A DNA stretch of 57,271 nt, the filler included, from Hydrolagus affinis (taxonomy: Eukaryota): assembly GCA_012026655.1 (NCBI GenBank). It is 4 parts of 4 records of this genome, joined end to end, with 100 filler letters (N's around TTAATTAATTAA, not from the genome) between each part and the next. Parts side by side here need not be neighbours in the genome. Positions count along the whole stretch, not along the records: positions 14,833 to 27,143 come from JAAILG010022123.1; 3 more parts are not named here. The stretch is one strand, 5' to 3'. The position numbers and the translations under genes are program-made. Each line of letters starts with the position of its first letter. The stretch's first letter is position 1. The notes below the pieces were generated by a model, which was not told the origin of the DNA, ran no database searches, and saw only the letters and a program-made list of their open reading frames with translations. Below are positions 14,833-27,143 of the stretch, piece after piece.

Positions 14833-15230
14833 GACAGGGCGAACTGCTGGGCAAGTTTCCTTACCTCTTACCTCTAATGCCTCTGTTTACCCGGCAGTAA
14901 GTAGGAGCAGTTGATCACTTTTCAAGGGATAACAATCCTTAAAAATAACTATCATAATTTGGTCACTGGATCTACGACAGTTTGTGGGACACCCTGAGTG
15001 GCGGTCGTGTTTTGTCCACAAATGTACAGTCACTTCACAATATATTCCGTGAAGCGCTTTGATTGGCTAGAAGACATGACAAGCGCTGTATCAAACGGAA
15101 CGATTACTATGATTGTGTTCAGAACTAAAGACAATGAACCAATCATGGAACTAGGAGTTATGTGTTACCGACTGGGCGGGGGGCTCACTGTGAGATGGCT
15201 TAAGTCGCATTGGATTTGACAAATTCCCAG

Positions 15231-16384
15231 AAAACTCAAAGACCTAAATATCAGGAAAGGACAGCGCACACCCAGGTGAGGAACACTAAGTTTAGATATT
15301 AGTCATTTATATCCGAAAACATTTTTGGATTAGAAAATAAAATGGAAAAACAGTTGTTTACCCCAATATTACTGTTGTATTTCACCCTCCTCGAATTGTT
15401 TAATTCCAGTTGCCTGGCTGACTGGCAGATCATGTAATTGGTAGAGTTATACAAACCCTTCACTACTTATCAAAATAATCATTCTTAATATGAATCTTAG
15501 AGACGAGTGATATATGTCCTCAGAAGCACAGCTTTGGAATTTTAGCGATTGTCGACTAACTGAGTTCCCATTTCTCTGTCAGCCTTATGGAAATGTATAG
15601 AAGCTTCTATTAATCCCATCTCAACATGAAAAAGAATTCTTAACTCCTAGTTTTTAAAAAGTAAACATTGTATAGGGAATGCTGGGGATTCTGAAAGCAT
15701 TTATTTGGGAGATTACTGCAGTCTGACAGCATTAATAAATTAGTTACATTTACAAATACTTGCTTTTCTATCCAAAGGGAGCAAACAGGAACAAGCCAAC
15801 ATATGCATCTCTGGATTTCTCTGGCTCTAAGAAAACAGGAAAGGCTAAACCTACCTACAAGAATACGGAATATGCCGAGGTAAGCGTGATAAACCATCTG
15901 GAGCTAAGAGTCAAGATATGTTAAAATACTAGGTGTCAAAGCTGATTATTGGTTTGTGTTAGGCATGCTCCCTATGCATTGCAATCAACATCTCCATTAT
16001 TGCAGCATGTCCAGGATGGTAGAAGACAATTTAGATGGACCTTGGTCTTTTACAAATATCTTCTATCTATCTAATAATATTTATTAACTGAATTATATAT
16101 TTATCACACATTTCATCAATCAATATAGCTGACATGTAACAACAACAAAATTACAGTTGTATAGAATTATAACTAGAAGAAAGACAATCAATGCAATCTT
16201 ATAAGTAGTATAAATATTTAGCAGAGGCGTAAAGTAACTAAAACAAAGATCTCACATTATACTGAACCTTTGTCTTTACTAGGTCAAACAAGGGGCAAAC
16301 AAGCTGACTTATGCTGCTCTGGATTTGAGTAGCTCAACGAAAATGGGAAAACCTAAATCCAACAATATGCAGAGCTACAGATGA
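15231..16384 (+). CDS. 3' cytoplasmic exons of a SIRP-alpha-like inhibitory IgSF receptor (exons 15231-15275, 15778-15879, 16283-16384)
   Basis: AG/GT-bounded phase-0 exons read KTQRPKYQERTAHTQ | GANRNKPTYASLDFSGSKKTGKAKPTYKNTEYAE | VKQGANKLTYAALDLSSSTKMGKPKSNNMQSYR*. The first exon has a weak acceptor and is the least certain. Confidence 0.72.
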
Positions 16385-17805
16385 AAACTACAAACGTATA
16401 ACAAAGATTGTCAAGAGGGAATCAGGATGATGTAACATAGAAGAATCTGTGTCCTTTCTTGCTGCCCCATTGGTATCTCTCAAGCACAACTGTGGCTATC
16501 AATGATTATTTACTTAGTTAAAAAAGGTAGTTACTTATTGGATAAATTATTTTAATGCTTGGCAGTGGATTTTCCCTCCTCTACACATTCCACCTCACAT
16601 GATCATACCACCAGTGCCACTGCCTCCTCTCAGCAAATAGTAGCCTCCATCAGGTAGATCAACACCACCAAAATTCAGAGAGCTATGAGTCATTCCTTCC
16701 CACCCTTGACCTTCAAAAACCTACATTAAGACTTATTAGTTCAGCACTCTATAGGAACTTTTACCTCCTTCCTCATCTATCAATTCAAAACTCTACCCAA
16801 ATTACAGAAATTTTCAATAGTGGTGTAAACAGATTTTATAACATTGTAATAATTTATTAAACATAAATTGTATTGATATCTTCATTACTCATTCTGTCTC
16901 TTCAGTATTAATGAAGTAACATTTGATGTGGTTATTATATGTCTGATTAAGAATATATGGCACCCCTCATCTACCATTGTTACAAGATTAACACGAGGGT
17001 GTTCAAACTGATCAAATACTGTATCTACAAAAAGTTACCTAATAGGAACCATCTAAATTTTTGACTGCATTGATTTTTTATGTCATTATATCATTATATC
17101 AGAAGTTTTCAACTCCTAAAATGAACAGGGTATGCAGTTTTTCAATTATTATGATCTATTATTTAACAGTAAAATGGTTGTGTTTCACTGTATGTGTGAC
17201 TATAGATAGCTATTATGCATATATTAATGCAACAATCGATATGAGCTACAAAACGGGATCTCTTCCATCAAATTTTTAAGTGTTTCCTGGTCCACTATTA
17301 CTAAATTTTCATGTCATGAAAATTTAAAACAATATAATAAATATTTACCATGGCACAGCACATTTCATGTCGGGAAGACATCCTAAAGTCCTCAATGGAC
17401 TTGTCTGTTACCCAAGCTGTGGGTGGGAGTGAAGGGAAGGGCAAAGGTGAATGAAAGGACAGTCAACTAGACTTCAAAGGGACCATGAAACAGGTGAGGG
17501 TGGGAGTGAATCAGAGCAACTTCATGATTGAGTGCCACAGAGTGGACACAGATAGGCTGAAAACCAGATTGCTTCAGTGCTCTGGGTCTGCTACTCACCT
17601 TGTTTAATTATTGCTGATGGAAATTCAGAGATTGGGTGTAGATAATCAATATATTGTGTAAGAGAGTGAACTTTGAATCACTTTATTTATTGGGGGCAAG
17701 TTCGCATTTTGTTCCTGAACTCAAATACTTTACATTGTGGCAATCAGCTCTCAGTAAACCATAAAGAGGCAGGTACTGTACACAGGACACTCAGTAACGA
17801 TGATC

Positions 17806-18450
17806 ATAATAATAATAATCCTTGCAATTGACATGTTGCTTTGCATGTCTTCTAGACGTCTCAAAGCGCTTCACAGAATATACTGTAAAGTGAATTGATT
17901 GTACTTTTGTGGGTGAAATGCAGCAGCCAATTGTGCACAGCAGTATCCCACAAACAGTCGTGGATTGAAATGACCAATTTTATTATTGTTTTTTTTAGGG
18001 ATTATTGTTAGGAGTGTGGAGTAAGGAAACTTGCCCAAGGTTTCACCCTGACCTGCCTGGATTCAAACACAGGTCTCGCGCTTGTGAGGCAAGTGCTCTA
18101 ACCACTGAGCAGCAGGATTCCACTATATAATAAGAATAATAACAATAATAATAATAATCCTTGCATTTGATATAGCGCTTTTCAAATCTTATTGATGTCT
18201 CAAAGCACTTCACAGAATATACTGTAAAATGAATTGAATGTTTATATTTGTGGGTGAAACGCGGCAGCGGATTGTGCATAGCGGTGTCCCACAAACAGTC
18301 ATGGATTGAAATGACAAATTTTTATTACAGTGTTGTGTTTTTTTGGATGGATTAGTATTGGGTAAGGAAACTTACCCAAGGTTTCACCCTGATCTGCCTG
18401 GATTTGAACACAGGTCTCACTCTTGTAAAGCGAGTGCTCTAACCACTGAG
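17806..18450 (-). mobile_element. Two tandem tRNA-derived SINE copies (representative of many copies in the window)
   Basis: Minus-strand head with A-box-like GCTCAGTGGTTAGAGC and B-box-like GTTTGAATCC, a conserved core and an (ATT)n tail. Related copies lie at about 6160-6440, 14560-14732, 26630-26880, 46700-46960 and 52480-53110. Confidence 0.8.
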
Positions 18451-18885
18451 TTACAGGAGCTCCAAATATTTGTACAGTGTCGGCAGGATGTCCTGAAGTG
18501 CTGGACAGTTAAGGATTGGCACCCAAACTGGTGAATGGGATCAAGAGGGGTAAAGGGCAGGGCGGGGAGGGTAGGGGTAGGAGGGTGACCAAAGGCAGAG
18601 TCAAAGAGGAGGGTCTTGAGGCGGGTCTTGAAGGAGGTAATGGTGGAAGGACTGCAGGATGGAGTTCCAACAGGTGGGGACAGAGTGACTGAAGGCCCAC
18701 CCGACAATGGTGGGGCAGATGAGGTGGGGGGAACATGAAGCAGGCTGGAGCCCAATGAGTGCATGGAGTAGACCGGTTGGTAGGGGGGTTAATAGGTCAC
18801 AGAGGTAGTGGGGAGGGTCAGGGGTGGGCAGATGGGGGAAGAGAGAGAGTACATGGAGGGCTTTGATGGTGAGGATCTGGATCTT
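18450..18885 (-). mobile_element. L2-type LINE 3' fragment ending in a hairpin
   Basis: Reverse strand reads SFKTRLKTLLFDSAFG, as in the other L2 3' ends. Confidence 0.7.
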
Positions 18886-19538
18886 GGATGATCCAGATCC
18901 TCACCATGTAACTCCTCCGTTACAACAATATGCCCTCCAGGTAGGGTAGGTCCTTAGAGCGCTTGCAACAGGAGTCAGAGGAATTGCTCCTCCATTATAA
19001 ACAAGCTTCCCCACCCCCCCACATACACACCAGATAAAAAGGCAAGAAGGATTATTAGTACAGTAATAATAATCCTTGCATTTGATGTAACTCTTTTCAG
19101 GTCTTCTAGATGTCTCAAAGCACTTCACAGAATATATTGTAAAGTGAATTGACTGTATATATAATATGTATAATGCTTGCATCTGATAAAGCACCATATT
19201 ATGTTATTGCTCCATCTCAAAGTACTTCACAGGTTATACTGTAAAGTGTAGTGACTGTGTATTTGGGGGGCGAAATGCAGCAGCAATTTGTATACAACAG
19301 TGCCCTACGGTCGCAGTCACAGTTTGAGTGCACAATTTTATTTGAAGGATATTTGGCCAGGGCACCATGAGAGAGAAAATCCTTTCTCTTTTTTAATGTC
19401 CACCTGAACAGGCAGACAGGACCTTTGCTTATTTTCTTCAATTGACAGCACCTCCGACACTATAACCACACAACCCAGGACTGCATTGCAGCTTACACAG
19501 TATAATATACTGTTTCAAAGTATACAGTACTATGTATT

Positions 19539-19882
19539 ATTAATAATAATACTGCATTGATGTCACGATTAATATTGCAACCATTCACTTCTCAGGGTTA
19601 TTGAGGGGTGGGGCTAGAACACACAAACCTTCTGACTCAGAAGAACCAAGGCTTGGCGACTTCAGAGTGTGTGTTGGGGTAACTATTGGAGTCTAACCAA
19701 TAAATCCACTTGCCATTCATATCACTGATCCCTGGCAAGTTTTCCTGCTGCTTGTCCATCTAGGACCACACTACCTGTTAGGACTCGCTTGCAAAGTTAA
19801 CAGAAGCTGAGAAGGGTTATTCCCTGCCCTCAGTGAATGGTTGCAATATTAATCATGACATCAATGCAGTATTATTATTAAT
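19539..19882. repeat. 51-bp inverted repeat pair around a 242-bp spacer (MITE-like or flanks of an inversion)
   Basis: 19539-19589 and 19832-19882 are reverse complements at 50/51 positions. Confidence 0.8.
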
Positions 19883-21289
19883 TCTGCCTATCTCCTCTTT
19901 TCCCATCTCACCGCATGCACCAGGTATGAGAAGCTTTGGGTACTTTTTGTTGTTCAGAGAAGTTAAGCAATCATGTGTGACTATGTTAGACAACCCAGCC
20001 TGGGGCAAAGAATATATCACTTGTTATCACATGTTCTGCTACTGGGTGTGATGAACTCTGCTATTTAAACCTGCATTGGCCTCTATCTCCCTGTTGCTAT
20101 CGTCTGCCGAACACAGGTAAATCTGTCCTGTGTTGTGTTCAGGAAATACCTAGATAGAATGCAGTTCTCAGTGAGATCTCAAAGGACAAAGTTCAAGCAT
20201 AAAAAGCTGATGTTCCTGGAGACCAAAATCGAGAGGATCCGCTGAGCTCTTATCTCCTCTCAAGGCAAGGCACTTCTGCCTCCAGCATTTCACCATTCCT
20301 GCTTCAATTATTTTTACCATGTCTCATGCATCTCGTTCTTCCAGTAGTCCTTTACAAAACCCAGGAATTGCTCCACTAACCGAACTCCCAAACATAGCCA
20401 GACCCCTTTCTCACACCTCTGACAGCTAAAGCTGTAAACTTCTTAGCTTCTTCTCAGCTCAGGCGCTGACTGCATCAATGTATTTCACACCACAGAGTCA
20501 ACCGAGAAACCTACAATCTTGTTTGACCATCAAGTTTGCAGCCTCTGCCCTCTCCCGCACCAAAACCCAACCTATCACCCAAATCCACCGTGGCTTCCCA
20601 CCATTTAAGCAACTTCCTGCAATAGGAATGGCTGGAATGCACCTTTACCCCAGGAATCAGGAGTCTAACTCCCATCTCTGCTTTATTATCCTACCTCACC
20701 ATGATAGAGCGAGCTATTAGTCATTCTGATGCCGCTTCTTGGAACTCCATTCTCTCGGGTTCTTTTCTTTGCTCCCCACATTCAAAGTGCCCCTCAAAAC
20801 CTATTGCTGACCTATCTTTTGGTTCATTTCTTCCTGCCTATTACCAATTCCACCTTCAAATTCCCCACATTTCGATTTACGATACCCAGACAGATATCTA
20901 TAGTGCTTTGGGGTGTCCTCGTATCGTGGATAGCACCTTGGACATGTAAATTGTATCCACTGGTAATTGTATTGCTAATTGTATTGCTGAATGTTCTGCT
21001 GATGTTCAGGTCATTTTCATTCACAAACTATCATCCTGACCAAATACCAACCTGACAAAAGAAAGTTGCATAAACGTTTCTTCCGAAATTCATTTTTTCT
21101 GGTTCGAATAAATCCAAGTTTAAACCCCAGTACACGATGGTCATCAAATAGATTAGAGGGAGCTCAATAATGTTATCCTTTCACCTACATGAAAGTTGAG
21201 GATTCCATTATAATTATTCCTATCTGCACATTAATATCCACTGTAAATTCTTCTTCTGATTTGTAATCCCATCTCTTCTACACACACCC

Positions 21290-23890
21290 TCAAATCCTCT
21301 CAGTACCACTCTCTCCTCCCTCTCCTTCCACCTGGAAACCTACCCGCATTTTCCTTGAAGACGTTCCCTTTCCAACAAAGCCCTCAGTATCCATGACCTC
21401 ATCCTGGATGAGCACATTGACATTCTTGGGCTTATGGAAACTGGCTGTCCTCTAATGACCCCGTCCCTCTAGTCGAAGCCTCCCCTCCAGGCTACACCTT
21501 CCACCACCACACCCCCCGCCCTAGCCTATGTGGTAGTGGGGTGGCCATCATCTCCAAAGCTTCCCTTGGTCTTTCTCCCAATGCCTCTGGCTGTTTGCCC
21601 TCTTTCGAGCACCTCACCCTCTACCATCTATCTCTTTCTCTAAAAAATATTCTGCTCTACTGCCCTCCTAAACCACTTTGGTCCTTCCTCTGATATTTCC
21701 ACTCTCCTCTCCTCCCTGTCCCACAGCTCTGAATACCTGCTCATCATGGGCAACTTCAAACTTCACCTAATCTCCCCCTGCATCACATCCTCCGATTTCA
21801 CTGCCCTCCTCTCCTCCCTAAACCTCACCCTCCATATCAACTCTCCAACCCATAACCATGGCAATGCACTCAACCTTGTCCTCACCCACGGCCTTGACAT
21901 CTCCAACCTCAACATTATGGACAAGGGTATCTTGGAACACTTGCTCACCTCCTTCTCCTCTCACATCTCTCTCTCCTCAACAAGCTCTCAACTGCACTCT
22001 TACACCCATGTAAACAGTCTTCCCCCTGTGACCCTCACAGAGGCCCTCACATCCTCTGACATCTTATCCCTCTGGCCTTCCACCTGCAGAGATGCTAAAG
22101 CAGCCATCCAGCTGTTGCACAATCGCCTCTCCCCCACCTTCAACTCTCTCATTCCCCTGAAGTCCACGATCATCTCCAAACCCACCCGATCGCCCTGGTA
22201 CAACAGTCATCTCCGCTCACAAAAGACATAGTCTCGACAGCTTGAGTGCAGGTGGCAGAAGCCGGGTTGACGGATCACTGCCTGCTGTGGCTCAAGCACC
22301 TCCACAGTTATCGCTATTCATGGTCACGAGCAAAAACAGCTTATTACTCAAACATCATTCTGGAGGGTAAAAACAGCCCCAAAGTCCTCTTTTCCACAAC
22401 CCACCACCTCCTACATGCACCTTCTCAGGCATCCTAAATCTTCACTTCAAATGTGAAGTGCGAGAAGGTCATGGTCTTCTCCTCCAAAATCCACAATATC
22501 CACCTGGCAGCCTCATCCTCCTGCCTCTCATCGCCCACCATCACCACCCACATTCCGTCCCCCTCACCTTCCCCATCATCAGCTTCTATCACTACTCCGT
22601 TCCTACAATCCAGTTTCCGCCCTACCCACAGTACAGAGACTGCGCTTGTGAAAGTCACAAGCAAGTCTCTATCTGTGACCAGGGCTCCCTCTGCCTCCTT
22701 GTCGTCCTGGACTCTTCAGCAACATTCGACACAGTCGACCACGCCATCCTCCTCCACCGCCTCCTCCGTTGTTCACCTCAGTGTGACTGCACTCGCCTGG
22801 TTTGAGTCCTACCTTACAAATCACCGGGAGTATATCGCCACAAATGGCTTTTCCTCCCGCTCTCACTCGGTTAAATGTGGGGTAACCCAAGCATCCATTC
22901 TTGGACCCCTCCTCTTCATAAACTATCCTCTTCCTTCTTGGTGACATCATCTGCAGACATGGGGTACACTACCACATGTATGCGGATGACACCCAATTCT
23001 ATTTTTCCGCCTCACTTTGCGACCCCTTGATGTACTGTCAGCCTGCCTGTCAGACATGAGGAGCTGGATGAGCGTGAATTTCCTGCACCTGTATGTTGAC
23101 AAGACGGAAGACATACTATTTGGCTCTCTTCATCATCTTCATTCACATGGCTCTCACCTCCTCCACCTTCATGACCTGCCCCTAAAACTCTCCAAACTGG
23201 TACGCAACCTTGGCGTCAGGTTCAACCCACAACTGTCCTTCCTCCCCCACATCCGGTCTCTCACCAGCACTGCTTTTTTCCACCTCCGACATTTTGCCCA
23301 TCTTTGGTAATAACTTGCCCCAAAAGCCGCTGAAACTCTGGTCCATGCCTTTGTCACCTCTCAGCTGGACTTTGCAAATCCACTCCTCCACCACAATCCA
23401 TAAAATCCAGCTCAGTCAGAACTCTGACGCCCGCGTTCTCACCCGGACCAAACTTCGCTCCCCCATTACCACAGTCCTTGCCAGATTCACTGGCTCCCTG
23501 TCCCGGAGAGGATCAATTTCAAGATCCTCACTCTTGGCTTCAAATCTCTCCAATCCTCTGCATCCCTTACCTCTCTGACCTCTTCTCTCCCCAAAACAGC
23601 ACCCGTTGCCTTCGCTCCTCCGGTTCAGGTCTCCTCCTCGTCTCCCAAATCCTCCGTTCCACAATCGGCGGCCGTGCCTTCAGCCACTGCGCCCCGAAGC
23701 TCTGGCACTCCCTTCCTCACTCCCTTTGCCTTGCTCCCTCTCTTCCTAGTTTTAGATCTCGGTTAAAGACCTTTCTGTTCGACTGCGCATTGGGTCACCT
23801 TATTCCCCTTCCCCCTGGCACGGACCCGGGGTCCGTTTTTGTGAAGCGCTCTGGAGGGCGCTCCATAAACCAAAGTTGTTGTTGTTGTTG
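21290..23890 (+). mobile_element. Degenerate L2-type LINE ORF2 (AP endonuclease + RT) with 3' tail
   Basis: Endonuclease-like LSIHDLILDEHIDILGLMET at about 21380, RT motifs LLVVLDSSATFDTVDH and HMYADDTQ, and a (GTT)n tail at about 23875-23893. Many stops and frameshifts. Confidence 0.85.
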
Positions 23891-24868
23891 TTGTAATCTC
23901 CTACAGTCAGGAAGTTTCCACCAAGGGAACCTAATTACTAATCAACAATTCTTCCTTACATTGTGTACAAAAAATACAATGACTTTCCGAATATCCCAGA
24001 AATCATTACATAGTTCTACTTGGAGACATACCTTCTTACTCCAATTCTAATATCCTTGACGATCAAAATGAGAATTATTATTACATGTTAGGTTTCCACA
24101 ATGAGTCTTGTTTTAATGCAGCAAATCGTTTCATTGCGAACAAGAACAATCTATTAGGATAATGTTTAATTTCAACTGAACGACATTTGTTCAGCTGTGA
24201 GAAATTTAAACGAACAGAAGTCAGGTTTAAAACTATCACGATTTAGCAACACACAACTTACAGGATTATGAAAAAAATGAACCAAATATCGGATTTGATC
24301 CATAAATTCCTAATTTTTTATAGAATAGTTTGGTTCTTTGGGCGTCCAATGGTTGAAAATACAGTAATTTGTTATAATAATAAGTGATTCTGAATATATT
24401 CAAATATATTTTTAAAATAATTGATTATTTCGATCTACCAGACTAACAATACCCCAATAGCACAACACAATATCTTAATGCATACGTTCTGAAAAGGTCC
24501 CTTCAAATGGCTCTGTTGGAGGGAACTGTTGGGAATGTTCTCCCACGAAATTAAACTTGTTTGTGTACGGTCACGAAAATAACAGTCAGACATTGCACTG
24601 AGGAGCTATACTAGTTAATAGTTCAAAGAGTAATAAAAGATGTATTGGTGTTTCAGATACAGTTCACCTTGTATCGTTATTGGCGTTAAATCATTTTTAG
24701 TCGCTCTTAATGTAGACATCAGTTTTTTATGAAAATGGAAACCAATTGTATTGCTCAATCTGCAGGGGCAGGACGTTAGGCGTCACTGACTTACATTCAT
24801 TTCAGCGTCTGCCACCCCTTGATGCAGACCAGCGGCGGGTCAGATAGTCTCAGACAGTGATCTGAGCC

Positions 24869-27143
24869 ATGGCAAGCGCTGCGTTTCACTATTTCTCTCT
24901 CGTGGGGTTACTTTCCACAGGTAGGTGCTCGGTTTGGTTAAAAAAAACTATGTATTTATGTCCTAAAGTACGCGCTCCGGGCGCTACCCTGAGAGAGAGA
25001 TTCGCTAGGTAAATGCAAAATGTTGTGAACGTAGTTTCGTTGCTTCACTTTCAACTCCCCGACCTCACGCTGTGTATCTTCTCTGTACTCGCTGTGATCG
25101 GTTCTGTATTTTACCCAATCAGTGTCTGAATTTATTCCTGATAGTTGCTGACGGTACTTTGATGAAAGTGACTCAACTCCCCAAACACACCGTCACTAAA
25201 GGAGGAAGCGTCACATTCCAGTGTGGCATTCCCTACTTTGAAGGCTCCCCACGTATTAAAGTGTACTGGTGGAAGCTTGGGGAGAGGGAGTACCTGCAAA
25301 CAAGGCCAGATCCCAGGAAAATATTTGGTTTCGAACAAGGAGGAAGCGGCTTCATTCAGCTCCTGGATGTGAATTTCCAGGACTCTGGAGTTTATCACTG
25401 CGCTCTGGTGTTACAGGGGAAAATAGCAGCAAATGGAACTGGATCCACTTTAACTGTTTGCCGTAAGTGTTAAACCAGCGTAGATCTGGATCATTGCTAT
25501 CTACACATGTTACCCAAACATAACTAACTAATACACTATACTCTGAAAAGAATCAAAAGTAGAATAAGACCTACATGTGTGTTTATCTTCTACTTTGGGG
25601 AAATGTTCCAGTTCCTGAAGAGGAATGGCATTCCCTGGTTACCTAATCCTGGAGAGTATAGGTTGGCAAGTGCCAAGGGTTGGGACCTGAGTCAGCTAAA
25701 GCCGCAAACTTGTCCCAGCAATTAAAAACTTGAAAACACTGTGTCCGGCAAGCTTCCTGCCGTGTGTGTGGGGCAGTCAGCCTGCCGCTTACTGACTAAA
25801 GTAAATAGGGGACATGAGTGGGAAGACTCTCTGCCCCCAGCACTGTCTGCCTCTGATCCTCGCTGATGAGCCGGGCTGGCTGGTCTGTCACCAGCAAAGC
25901 TTGAGAGGCTCTGAGGACCTGCCAACGTTAGGAATGGAAACACTGACACAGAATTGACTGAGTTGGAACATTGCGCCGCTGAGCGCGTCCTCGTAGAGCA
26001 GTTCAGTTCCAAGGAGACTCCATTCACCTCGATAGTGTAATCATTTAGTGGCTACAAACACGATAAACATGCCAGTAACCAAACTAACCCAAACCAAATA
26101 ATAATAATGAATTTTAAAATAATAATAATTCGTATCATTAGGAATATATACTGAGATTTATTCGCATCGAACTGTCCGAATAACACAATCGAGAATTGCA
26201 TAACATCTCTAGAATATCCTTGTAAAGGTGGGAAACACGAAATTTATCATGGATACTTTTAAGAAGATTGTGATAGTTTTTTTTTGCATTGATGTCAGCC
26301 ACTCGGCTGACTGAAAACATTGTGGAAATGAATCCTTACCTCGTTGACGGTTTAAATAGAAAATAGCAGCCGCGTTTTATTCTCGCTTGGGCTATCTTTT
26401 TTGGGTGAAGTCATTGACTTAAAGGTGAACTACATTCAATACTAACAATGTTGTTTCATTACTTTTGGAAACTGGGATTCCTGGAGATTAAATAAAATAT
26501 GCCGTTAAGTAAGAAATACATAAATCAGATCAATTTGCGGCAGAAAATGTAATCGGATATAAATCAGAATAAACGTTTCTCCAACTGAAGTTGTGTAATT
26601 CGGTTCCAATATGGAGGTTTGTATCGCAGTGGCTCGAGCCTCACAAGCGAGAGACCTGTGCTCGATTCCAGGCAGGCCTGAACCTTGGGCAAGGGTCCTC
26701 ACTCCTCACACCGGATTATAATCCCAGAAGAGGATCCACAACAATACATTGATCATAAATTGTCTGTGCGCAATTGGCCGCCGCGTTTCTACCACAAACG
26801 TACAAGTACCTTCTGTGAGGCGCTTGGAGACGTACAGAAGATGTGAAAAACACTATGTGAAATGCAAGGATTATTATTGTTATTACCTAATTTACAGTTC
26901 CGCCAACGTCGCTGAAGATAATCCCAAGATTTAGTCAACATAATACACTCGTGTCTCTGACTCTTGTGTGTCAAACGGCTGTGTATTACCCGAAGAATCT
27001 CACCCTGACTTGGTATAACAATGGCACCGAAATTACAACCGGAATAAATACCACTGAGCAGCAGCATCCAGATGGATTGTATAGGACTTCCAGCTCACTG
27101 GAGGTGGCATCACCTGTCTTGAATGGGACTGTTTATACCTGTA
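24869..27143 (+). CDS. Non-rearranging leader-VJ-C1 IgSF receptor gene (SIRP/VJC1-like), 3' part lost in gap (exons 24869-24920, 25145-25462, 26898-27143+)
   Basis: Leader MASAAFHYFSLVGLLST (phase 1). V exon has FQC, YWW, DSGVYHC and a germline-fused G strand NGTGSTLTV, followed by a GTAAGT donor and no RSS. The C1-set exon has LVC, YYPKNLTLTW, HPDGLYRTSSSL and VYTC. All exons are open and in phase. Confidence 0.88.

Follow-up and report, generated by a model that had tools for sequence, protein, structure and literature searches.

The cytoplasmic tail of human SIRP-alpha carries the tyrosine motifs ITYADL, TEYASI and LTYADL (PMC5413580), and a peptide of the form DITYADL...HTEYASIQTS from the human protein has been used as a docking unit for SHP-2 (PMC5589908). 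A V-C1 'precursor-like' receptor, with a link to the antigen receptors, has been proposed from the structure of SIRP-alpha (PMC2785349). In this report we examine a window of 57,271 nt from Hydrolagus affinis (assembly GCA_012026655.1; four parts joined end to end, along which all positions are counted) that holds the 3' end of a gene for a SIRP-alpha-like receptor tail and, downstream on the same strand, the 5' end of a second gene of the same family.

Public annotation already contains the family to which this tail belongs, under SIRP-like names assigned automatically, and the locus is one more member of it; no description of the family was found in literature searches on SIRP in teleosts, sharks and the elephant shark. 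Comparison with the known members leaves us in very little doubt that the tail exons are genuine coding DNA of a cartilaginous-fish receptor family built of leader, V domain, C1 domain, transmembrane (TM) segment and tail. The present copy appears to have been eroded from an ancestor with a three-unit, six-tyrosine tail.

Materials and Methods

The piece analysed covers positions 14833-27143 (record JAAILG010022123.1) and starts approximately 340 nt upstream of the tail remnant. The gene runs 5' to 3' in such a way that its upstream exons fall past the left edge of the piece, and the ectodomain is beyond view. The peptide of tail exon 2 was searched with phmmer against 1.84 billion representative proteins. 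A hidden Markov model (HMM) of the tail modules was built from 18 modules of 7 family proteins, and the window was left out of the build.

Results

Tail exons and their motifs

A preliminary description of this locus had proposed three short phase-0 exons that splice into a tyrosine-rich tail. Their coordinates and peptides are matched exactly by translation, and each has an AG acceptor, a GT donor and phase 0. They are listed here together with a remnant in another frame:

15231-15275, plus strand: exon 1 as first described; translates to KTQRPKYQERTAHTQ; donor CAG/gtgagg
15778-15879, plus strand: tail exon 2; 34 aa; acceptor ccaaag/G, donor GAG/gtaagc
16283-16384, plus strand: exon 3, the last coding exon as assembled; VKQGANKLTYAAL...MQSYR, then the stop TGA at 16382-16384
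16360-16401, plus strand: out-of-frame remnant of the ancestral C-terminus; QQYAELQMKTTNV, including QQYAEL, then the ancestral stop TAA at 16399-16401

Exon 2 amounts to one complete two-tyrosine module, with PTYASL at 15796-15813 and, 23 residues on, TEYAE at 15865-15879. The Val that completes TEYAEV is supplied by exon 3, and reading through the donor codon gives Val as well. A second in-phase donor, AGC/gtgata, lies 6 nt past GAG/gtaagc (15879-15885) and is weaker; its position matches that of the donor used in the Callorhinchus milii gene, and either donor keeps the Val at +3 of TEYAEV. Exon 3 consists of V, KQGANK and LTYAAL (16304-16321) and continues to a C-terminus ...KPKSNNMQSYR. 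At the DNA level exons 2 and 3 are duplicates of one another.

The motif classes assigned earlier stand in part. LTYAAL fits the consensus of the immunoreceptor tyrosine-based inhibitory motif (ITIM), (S/I/V/L)xYxx(I/V/L), and TEYAE plus V fits that of the immunoreceptor tyrosine-based switch motif (ITSM), TxYxx(V/I); PTYASL, which had been called ITIM-like, has Pro at -2 and thus lies outside the canonical ITIM consensus. A fourth motif had been placed one frame off, and QQYAEL is indeed found in the other frame within 16360-16401. With Leu at +3 this motif (NTQYAEL in the sequencing run X1, described below) is ITIM-like rather than an ITSM. Such a collection of motifs is not beyond chance: when the piece was shuffled 500 times with its composition kept, 46 shuffles had at least four same-strand xYAx[LIV] matches within 1.2 kb, and so the case for a real tail rests on homology.

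The receptor family in cartilaginous fishes

Exon 2 returned eight matches with phmmer, among them tails of immunoglobulin superfamily (IgSF) receptors at E values from 6e-25 to 7e-4. Five of the eight, P0001-P0004 and P0008, are receptors of the IgSF and have a V-set domain, to which three of them add a C1-set domain; the remaining three matches look unrelated. The informative matches all come from cartilaginous fishes, P0001, P0002, P0003 and P0008 from C. milii and P0004 from Heterodontus francisci, and they answer the concern that the tail might belong to an unrelated gene outside the IgSF: by phmmer and Pfam it does not. In P0002 (XP_007902824) and P0003 (XP_007902825), which start with a leader, Pfam finds a V-set domain and a single C1-set domain; a TM segment and a long repeated tail come after these. 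The NCBI name of these homologues, 'tyrosine-protein phosphatase non-receptor type substrate 1-like', means SIRP-alpha-like. Searching at full length added members from Scyliorhinus canicula ('signal-regulatory protein beta-1-like'), Mustelus asterias and Heptranchias perlo. A word search with the tail of P0002 (residues 283-406) returned P0002 and P0003 only, a result that bears neither on tetrapod SIRPs nor on a gene model for this locus. When P0002 is compared with solved structures, the best non-antibody matches are SIRP-alpha (2wng, 1.4e-18) and SIRP-gamma.

Against the HMM of tail modules exon 2 scores 47.2 bits (E 4e-13), and a Pfam scan of the tail exons gave no match, as expected for a disordered tail. 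In a blastn comparison with one C. milii gene of the family (L001), similarity is limited to the three exons, apart from shared copies of a short interspersed element (SINE). The same comparison with four C. milii loci (L001-L004) gave no near-identical region, and the window gene is none of those four.

In seven family proteins the tail tyrosines stand at 33/36, 56/59, 70/73, 93/96, 109-112 and 131-135 after the TM segment, that is, as pairs 22-23 residues apart with 14-16 residues between pairs. Each unit begins with xxYA(T/A)L and has, 23 residues later, T/x-x-Y-A-x-(V/I/L/T). Exon maps of four C. milii genes show phase-0 exons with one tyrosine pair apiece at the 3' ends, and the window exons, likewise in phase 0, have the same layout of one module per exon. 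Family tails range from a single unit to at least four.

Two further members, P0018 (S. canicula) and P0014 (C. milii), are short-tailed, with about 11 residues after a predicted TM segment that contains an Arg. Both are candidates for the role of activating partner, and the family would then be one of paired receptors in the manner of SIRP-alpha and SIRP-beta.

Lesions in the tail

Exon 1 had been described as one of three exons. It is a remnant, and the tail is interrupted by a lost acceptor, a stop codon, a Tyr to His replacement and a 10-nt deletion:

15169-15170, plus strand: ancestral 3' splice acceptor of tail exon A; CG in the window, not AG
15171-15275, plus strand: remnant of ancestral tail exon A (module 1); TGRGAHCEMA, stop, VALDLTNSQKTQRPKYQERTAHTQ
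16361/16362, plus strand: 10-nt deletion relative to X1; ACAAGAATAC absent, with flanking ACAA microhomology

Read in frame, the DNA upstream of exon 1 gives ...GRGAHCEMA, a stop, and VALDLTNSQ, which runs directly into KTQRPKYQERTAHTQ. In tblastn the homologues P0013 ('EPVAYVALNLNNSKKTPRPKKQEERTVYAQ') and P0002 ('EMVSYATLDLTGSQKTRRPKHQEERTVYSE') align through this stop, and exon 1 as first described therefore covers only the 3' portion of the ancestral exon for the first module; its supposed acceptor is coding TCC CAG in the C. milii gene L001. A DNA alignment of exon A and its flanks with the C. milii paralogues L001-L004 places '..ttttacag/' or '..ttttaacag/' at the ancestral border in three of the four, where the window reads 'gttaccg/ACTGGG'. 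The stop, TAA at 15201-15203, occupies the first tyrosine codon of module 1 (TAY to TAA), and CAC (His) at 15267-15269 stands in place of the second tyrosine of that module, so that TVY has become TAH.

Both sampled 31-mers of 15171-15235 are present in runs X5 and X6, which belong to one study, and in run X7, which belongs to another. Of the 35 possible 31-mers in this interval 31 span the third base of the TAA, and with 31-mers in three runs from two studies the stop is probably not a slip of the assembly. Run X7 is a fish gut metagenome, and its exact 31-mers of the locus point to host DNA from the same or a very close species.

The contigs of X1 run collinearly with the window across both exons and introns, at a depth of about 50 and approximately 2% divergence, from which it follows that X1 is genomic DNA of a close relative. 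With the additional 10 nt, an exon 3 of the X1 type reads ...KPKSNKNTQYAELQMKTTNV to its stop and restores ...NTQYAEL..., and this end agrees with the family consensus ...KPK.SDKNTEYAE(V/I). Because the 10 nt restore the consensus, it is the window that carries a deletion, and this deletion is the reason why the fourth motif is out of frame. The window copy has no intact frame through all of the tail modules, and three of six ancestral tyrosine motifs (PTYASL, TEYAEV and LTYAAL) can still be read.

Under the proposed course of erosion, unit 1 would have lost its splice acceptor (AG to CG), its first tyrosine (TAY to TAA) and its second tyrosine (Tyr to His), and unit 3 would have lost its second tyrosine by the frameshifting deletion of 10 nt. 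Only unit 2 (PTYASL...TEYAEV) and LTYAAL would then be left in readable form.

Present state of the copy

Decaying copies are a usual by-product of birth-and-death evolution in receptor clusters of this kind, and we give even chances that the copy in the window is one of them and is no longer properly expressed. Among the few runs that could be searched, no RNA run contained words from exon 3 or the 3' untranslated region, the sole holder of such words being the genomic X1, and this is weak evidence. Three single-cell RNA runs from another organism match the window only at 15005-15090, within a SINE.

Several observations weigh against decay. Exons 2 and 3 are still open, and their splice sites are good and canonical. 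The stop could be skipped through an in-frame cAG at 15230/15231, in which case both the acceptor loss and the TAA would be intronic. The natural number of units runs from one to at least four, and a short tail need not mean the death of the gene. The differences listed between the window and X1 number 0 in exons 1 and 2 and 9 or 10 in the 502-nt intron 1, a contrast which is not significant and in which at most one unlisted difference could fall in exons 1 and 2; the pattern hints at constraint on these two exons. The erosion was read from the tail exons, the upstream exons being outside the piece.

These observations bear on an alternative to which we assign a somewhat lower than even probability, namely that the gene still functions. 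The dead 5' part of the first tail exon would be skipped by use of the cryptic acceptor at 15230/15231, and the product would have a shortened inhibitory tail with one SHP-docking pair (PTYASL-23 aa-TEYAEV), one canonical ITIM (LTYAAL) and the end ...MQSYR. The frame is open from 15204 to the good donor at 15275, the acceptor ttcccag/AAAACT at 15231 is a cAG in phase 0, and a plausible branch site, ctcAc, can be read about 43 nt upstream of 15231. Exons 2 and 3 are undamaged and have strong splice sites, the number of units differs among expressed members of the family, and the absence of listed X1 differences from exons 1 and 2 fits a gene in use. However, the pyrimidine tract upstream of 15231 is a weak one (9 of 17), splicing to the nearer AG at 15203-15204 would yield a dead frame, and the annotated C. 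milii gene model does not use the corresponding TCC CAG as an acceptor. Four lesions within approximately 330 nt of ancestral coding sequence also speak for decay rather than function, as does, weakly, the failure to find RNA support among the few searchable runs.

The neighbouring gene and the cluster

A second gene of the family, represented by its 5' part and apparently intact, starts on the same strand 8.5 kb downstream of the tail. The features beyond the tail exons are as follows:

14910-15114, plus strand: SINE-like repeat, intronic, just upstream of the ancestral tail exon; 70-79% identity to several C. milii L001 sites (blastn)
16856-16861, plus strand: candidate polyadenylation signal ATTAAA (pattern search only)
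17336-17341, plus strand: candidate polyadenylation signal AATAAA (pattern search only)
24869-24920, plus strand: leader exon of the next gene; MASAAFHYFSLVGLLST, phase 1, donor G/gtaggt
25145-25462, plus strand: V-set exon of the next gene; phase 1-1, J-like motif GNGTGSTLTV, Pfam V-set/Ig_3
26898-27143, plus strand: C1-set exon of the next gene; Pfam C1-set 1.6e-11, clipped by the edge of the piece

The leader resembles those of the C. milii family members (M..L.LIGIIS/AT followed by V at the junction), and a model with a 44-nt intron and its ATG at 25013 was dropped because the leader at 24869-24920 fits the family leaders. The V exon is 51% identical to P0002 (E 7.5e-31). The C1 exon is 65% identical to P0016, and its matches among solved structures include UrIg2 (1.3e-13) and SIRP-alpha (2wng, 5.4e-9). 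Joined, leader, V and C1 give 205 open aa with 54-56% identity to P0016 and P0002 (E 1e-73 to 1e-75). The leader is followed by an intron of 224 nt and the V exon by one of 1.4 kb, which holds a SINE at 26612-26885; all splice sites are canonical and in phase 1.

In C. milii the family forms a cluster at 15.22-15.66 Mb of MU249845.1, where the next gene on the same strand begins 5.5-9.3 kb past a tail. The same head-to-tail arrangement is found in the window and, given this arrangement, the ectodomain that belonged to the tail was likely also V-C1. The model of P0001 (C. milii XP_007904055) contains two tail modules followed by the V-C1-TM-tail of the next gene. It looks like a fusion artefact produced by the combination of a head-to-tail cluster and tiny tail exons.

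Repeats

Within the intronic SINE-like repeat upstream of the tail, positions 15005-15090 are covered very deeply by the reads and contigs of all runs. Other copies of one SINE-like family lie at 17806-18450, 18901-19300 and 26612-26885, and the family includes two tandem copies with a period of 341. The copies have 75-97% identity to many sites in the C. milii loci, which points to a holocephalan or a close relative as the source of the window.

Between tail and neighbour, the stretch 20333-23832 has strong strand asymmetry (GC skew about -0.4 at a GC content of about 0.5) and several plus-strand open reading frames (ORFs) of 100-190 aa. One of these, with ...FRPTHSTETALVKV..., presumably resembles a reverse transcriptase. 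Pfam gave no match at E<0.01 to the retroelement-like ORFs (21.7-24.0 kb) and one weak match below threshold, and blastn gave weak matches of the stretch to the flanks of L001. The stretch is probably a degenerate retroelement of the kind without long terminal repeats.

Discussion

If the tail acts as its motifs suggest, each phase-0 tail exon would encode one docking unit, a pair of tyrosines. After ligand binding, the pair would be phosphorylated by Src-family kinases. The phosphorylated pair could then bind both SH2 domains of SHP-1 or SHP-2 as a bidentate unit, as in SIRP-alpha, and such binding would relieve the autoinhibition of the phosphatase and switch it on.

That the exons instead belong to the tail of another ITIM/ITSM receptor, or have converged on one (CD33-related Siglecs, CEACAM- or PECAM-like receptors, or a protein outside the IgSF), is in our view very improbable. 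Pairs of an ITIM and an ITSM are widespread among unrelated inhibitory receptors. The human SIRP-alpha peptide scores 12.1 bits against the family profile, a value reached by 0 of 5000 full shuffles and, when the tyrosine cores are held fixed and the linker alone is shuffled, by 228 of 5000; the resemblance therefore resides in the cores and the distance between them, similarity in the linker being marginal, and it does not tell common descent from convergence on SHP binding. However, no exon 2 match carries the C2-set domains of Siglecs or CEACAMs, the domain found being C1-set. SIRP-alpha and SIRP-gamma are the top non-antibody structures for P0002, and the adjoining gene in the window belongs to the same V-C1 family. 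At the level of the family this alternative is largely refuted.

An origin of the open frames and their tyrosine motifs by chance, in AT-rich intergenic DNA, carries virtually no weight for us. It would explain the loose motif cluster, which 9% of shuffles reach by themselves, and is already refuted by the E value of 4e-13 against a profile built without the window, by C. milii conservation limited to the exons, by exon borders that agree with the gene structure of the family and by the 10-nt insertion in the relative X1 that restores the family consensus.

For the genome, two gene ends are gained, the 3' end of a receptor gene that may be a pseudogene and the 5' end of the gene next to it, and the two together mark a tandem cluster of SIRP-like paired receptors. 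Such a cluster is invisible to ORF-based tracks because its exons measure only 45-320 nt. The family offers a very regular case of a signalling tail assembled from exon-sized units of two tyrosines, the number of which shifts by duplication and decay, and it bears on the idea that SIRP-type V-C1 receptors are old relatives of the antigen receptors. Beyond that a single copy adds little, as the family has already been deposited in the databases under automatic names.

We regard it as a tentative proposal, somewhat doubtful, that the cartilaginous-fish V-C1 family is the true sister or ancestral lineage of the tetrapod SIRPs. If it were, SIRP-type inhibitory signalling would date to the base of the jawed vertebrates, and the two SHP-docking pairs of SIRP-alpha would go back to a single exon-encoded unit, copied by exon duplication. 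In that case the V-C1 'precursor-like' receptor of PMC2785349 would have a living example in this family.

Compared with its nearest relatives, the SIRP-alpha-like models of C. milii and sharks, the window has tail pieces that are 53-69% identical to theirs. The copy is identical to no retrieved member of the cartilaginous-fish SIRP-alpha-like family, and its exon 2/3 junctions are offset by two or three codons from those of XP_007902824.

The CD33-related Siglecs differ in their ectodomain, which is V-set plus C2-set, whereas the proteins with the present tail have C1-set domains. UrIg and UrIg2, shark molecules of VJ-C1 type (PMC12227049; PDB 9dmx), share the VJ and C1 domains and provide the top structural match of the C1 exon in the window. 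UrIg2, in contrast, has nine C1 domains, and PMC12227049 mentions neither an ITIM nor a tyrosine tail. Identity with UrIg was rejected on these grounds, the architecture being different and no tyrosine tail being described; the match is one generic to C1-set domains (about 35% identity).

The earlier reading of an inhibitory tail of SIRP-alpha type survives in that the informative homologues are V-set/C1-set members of the IgSF with alternating motifs; it has to be amended in that the tail is eroded and that the family has one C1 domain and not two. In P0002, P0003 and P0013 a single C1 exon lies between V and TM, whereas SIRP-alpha has two C1 domains. The tail units of the family vary in number and were built by exon duplication, and the second motif of the first unit is TVYA(Q/E)T in the family, which is neither an ITIM nor an ITSM. 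On present sequence comparisons, a tail that would work like that of SIRP-alpha is better supported than strict membership among the SIRPs. The likenesses extend to the ectodomain, since the homologues and the neighbouring gene have a C1-set domain after a V domain whose J-like strand is of the type G-x-G-T-x-L-x-V, and to the presence of short-tailed members with a TM Arg (P0018 and P0014). In the tail of the window, PTYASL, TEYAEV and LTYAAL follow the alternating pattern xTYAxL / xEYAx(I/V); the four-tyrosine arrangement of SIRP, two pairs with tyrosines about 24 residues apart, is recognizable in pattern and spacing, and the window retains three of the four in frame. The tyrosines of exon 2 are 23 residues apart, as against 24 in the human docking peptide, and the two peptides align with 11 identities in 29 positions, one gap and both tyrosines in register.

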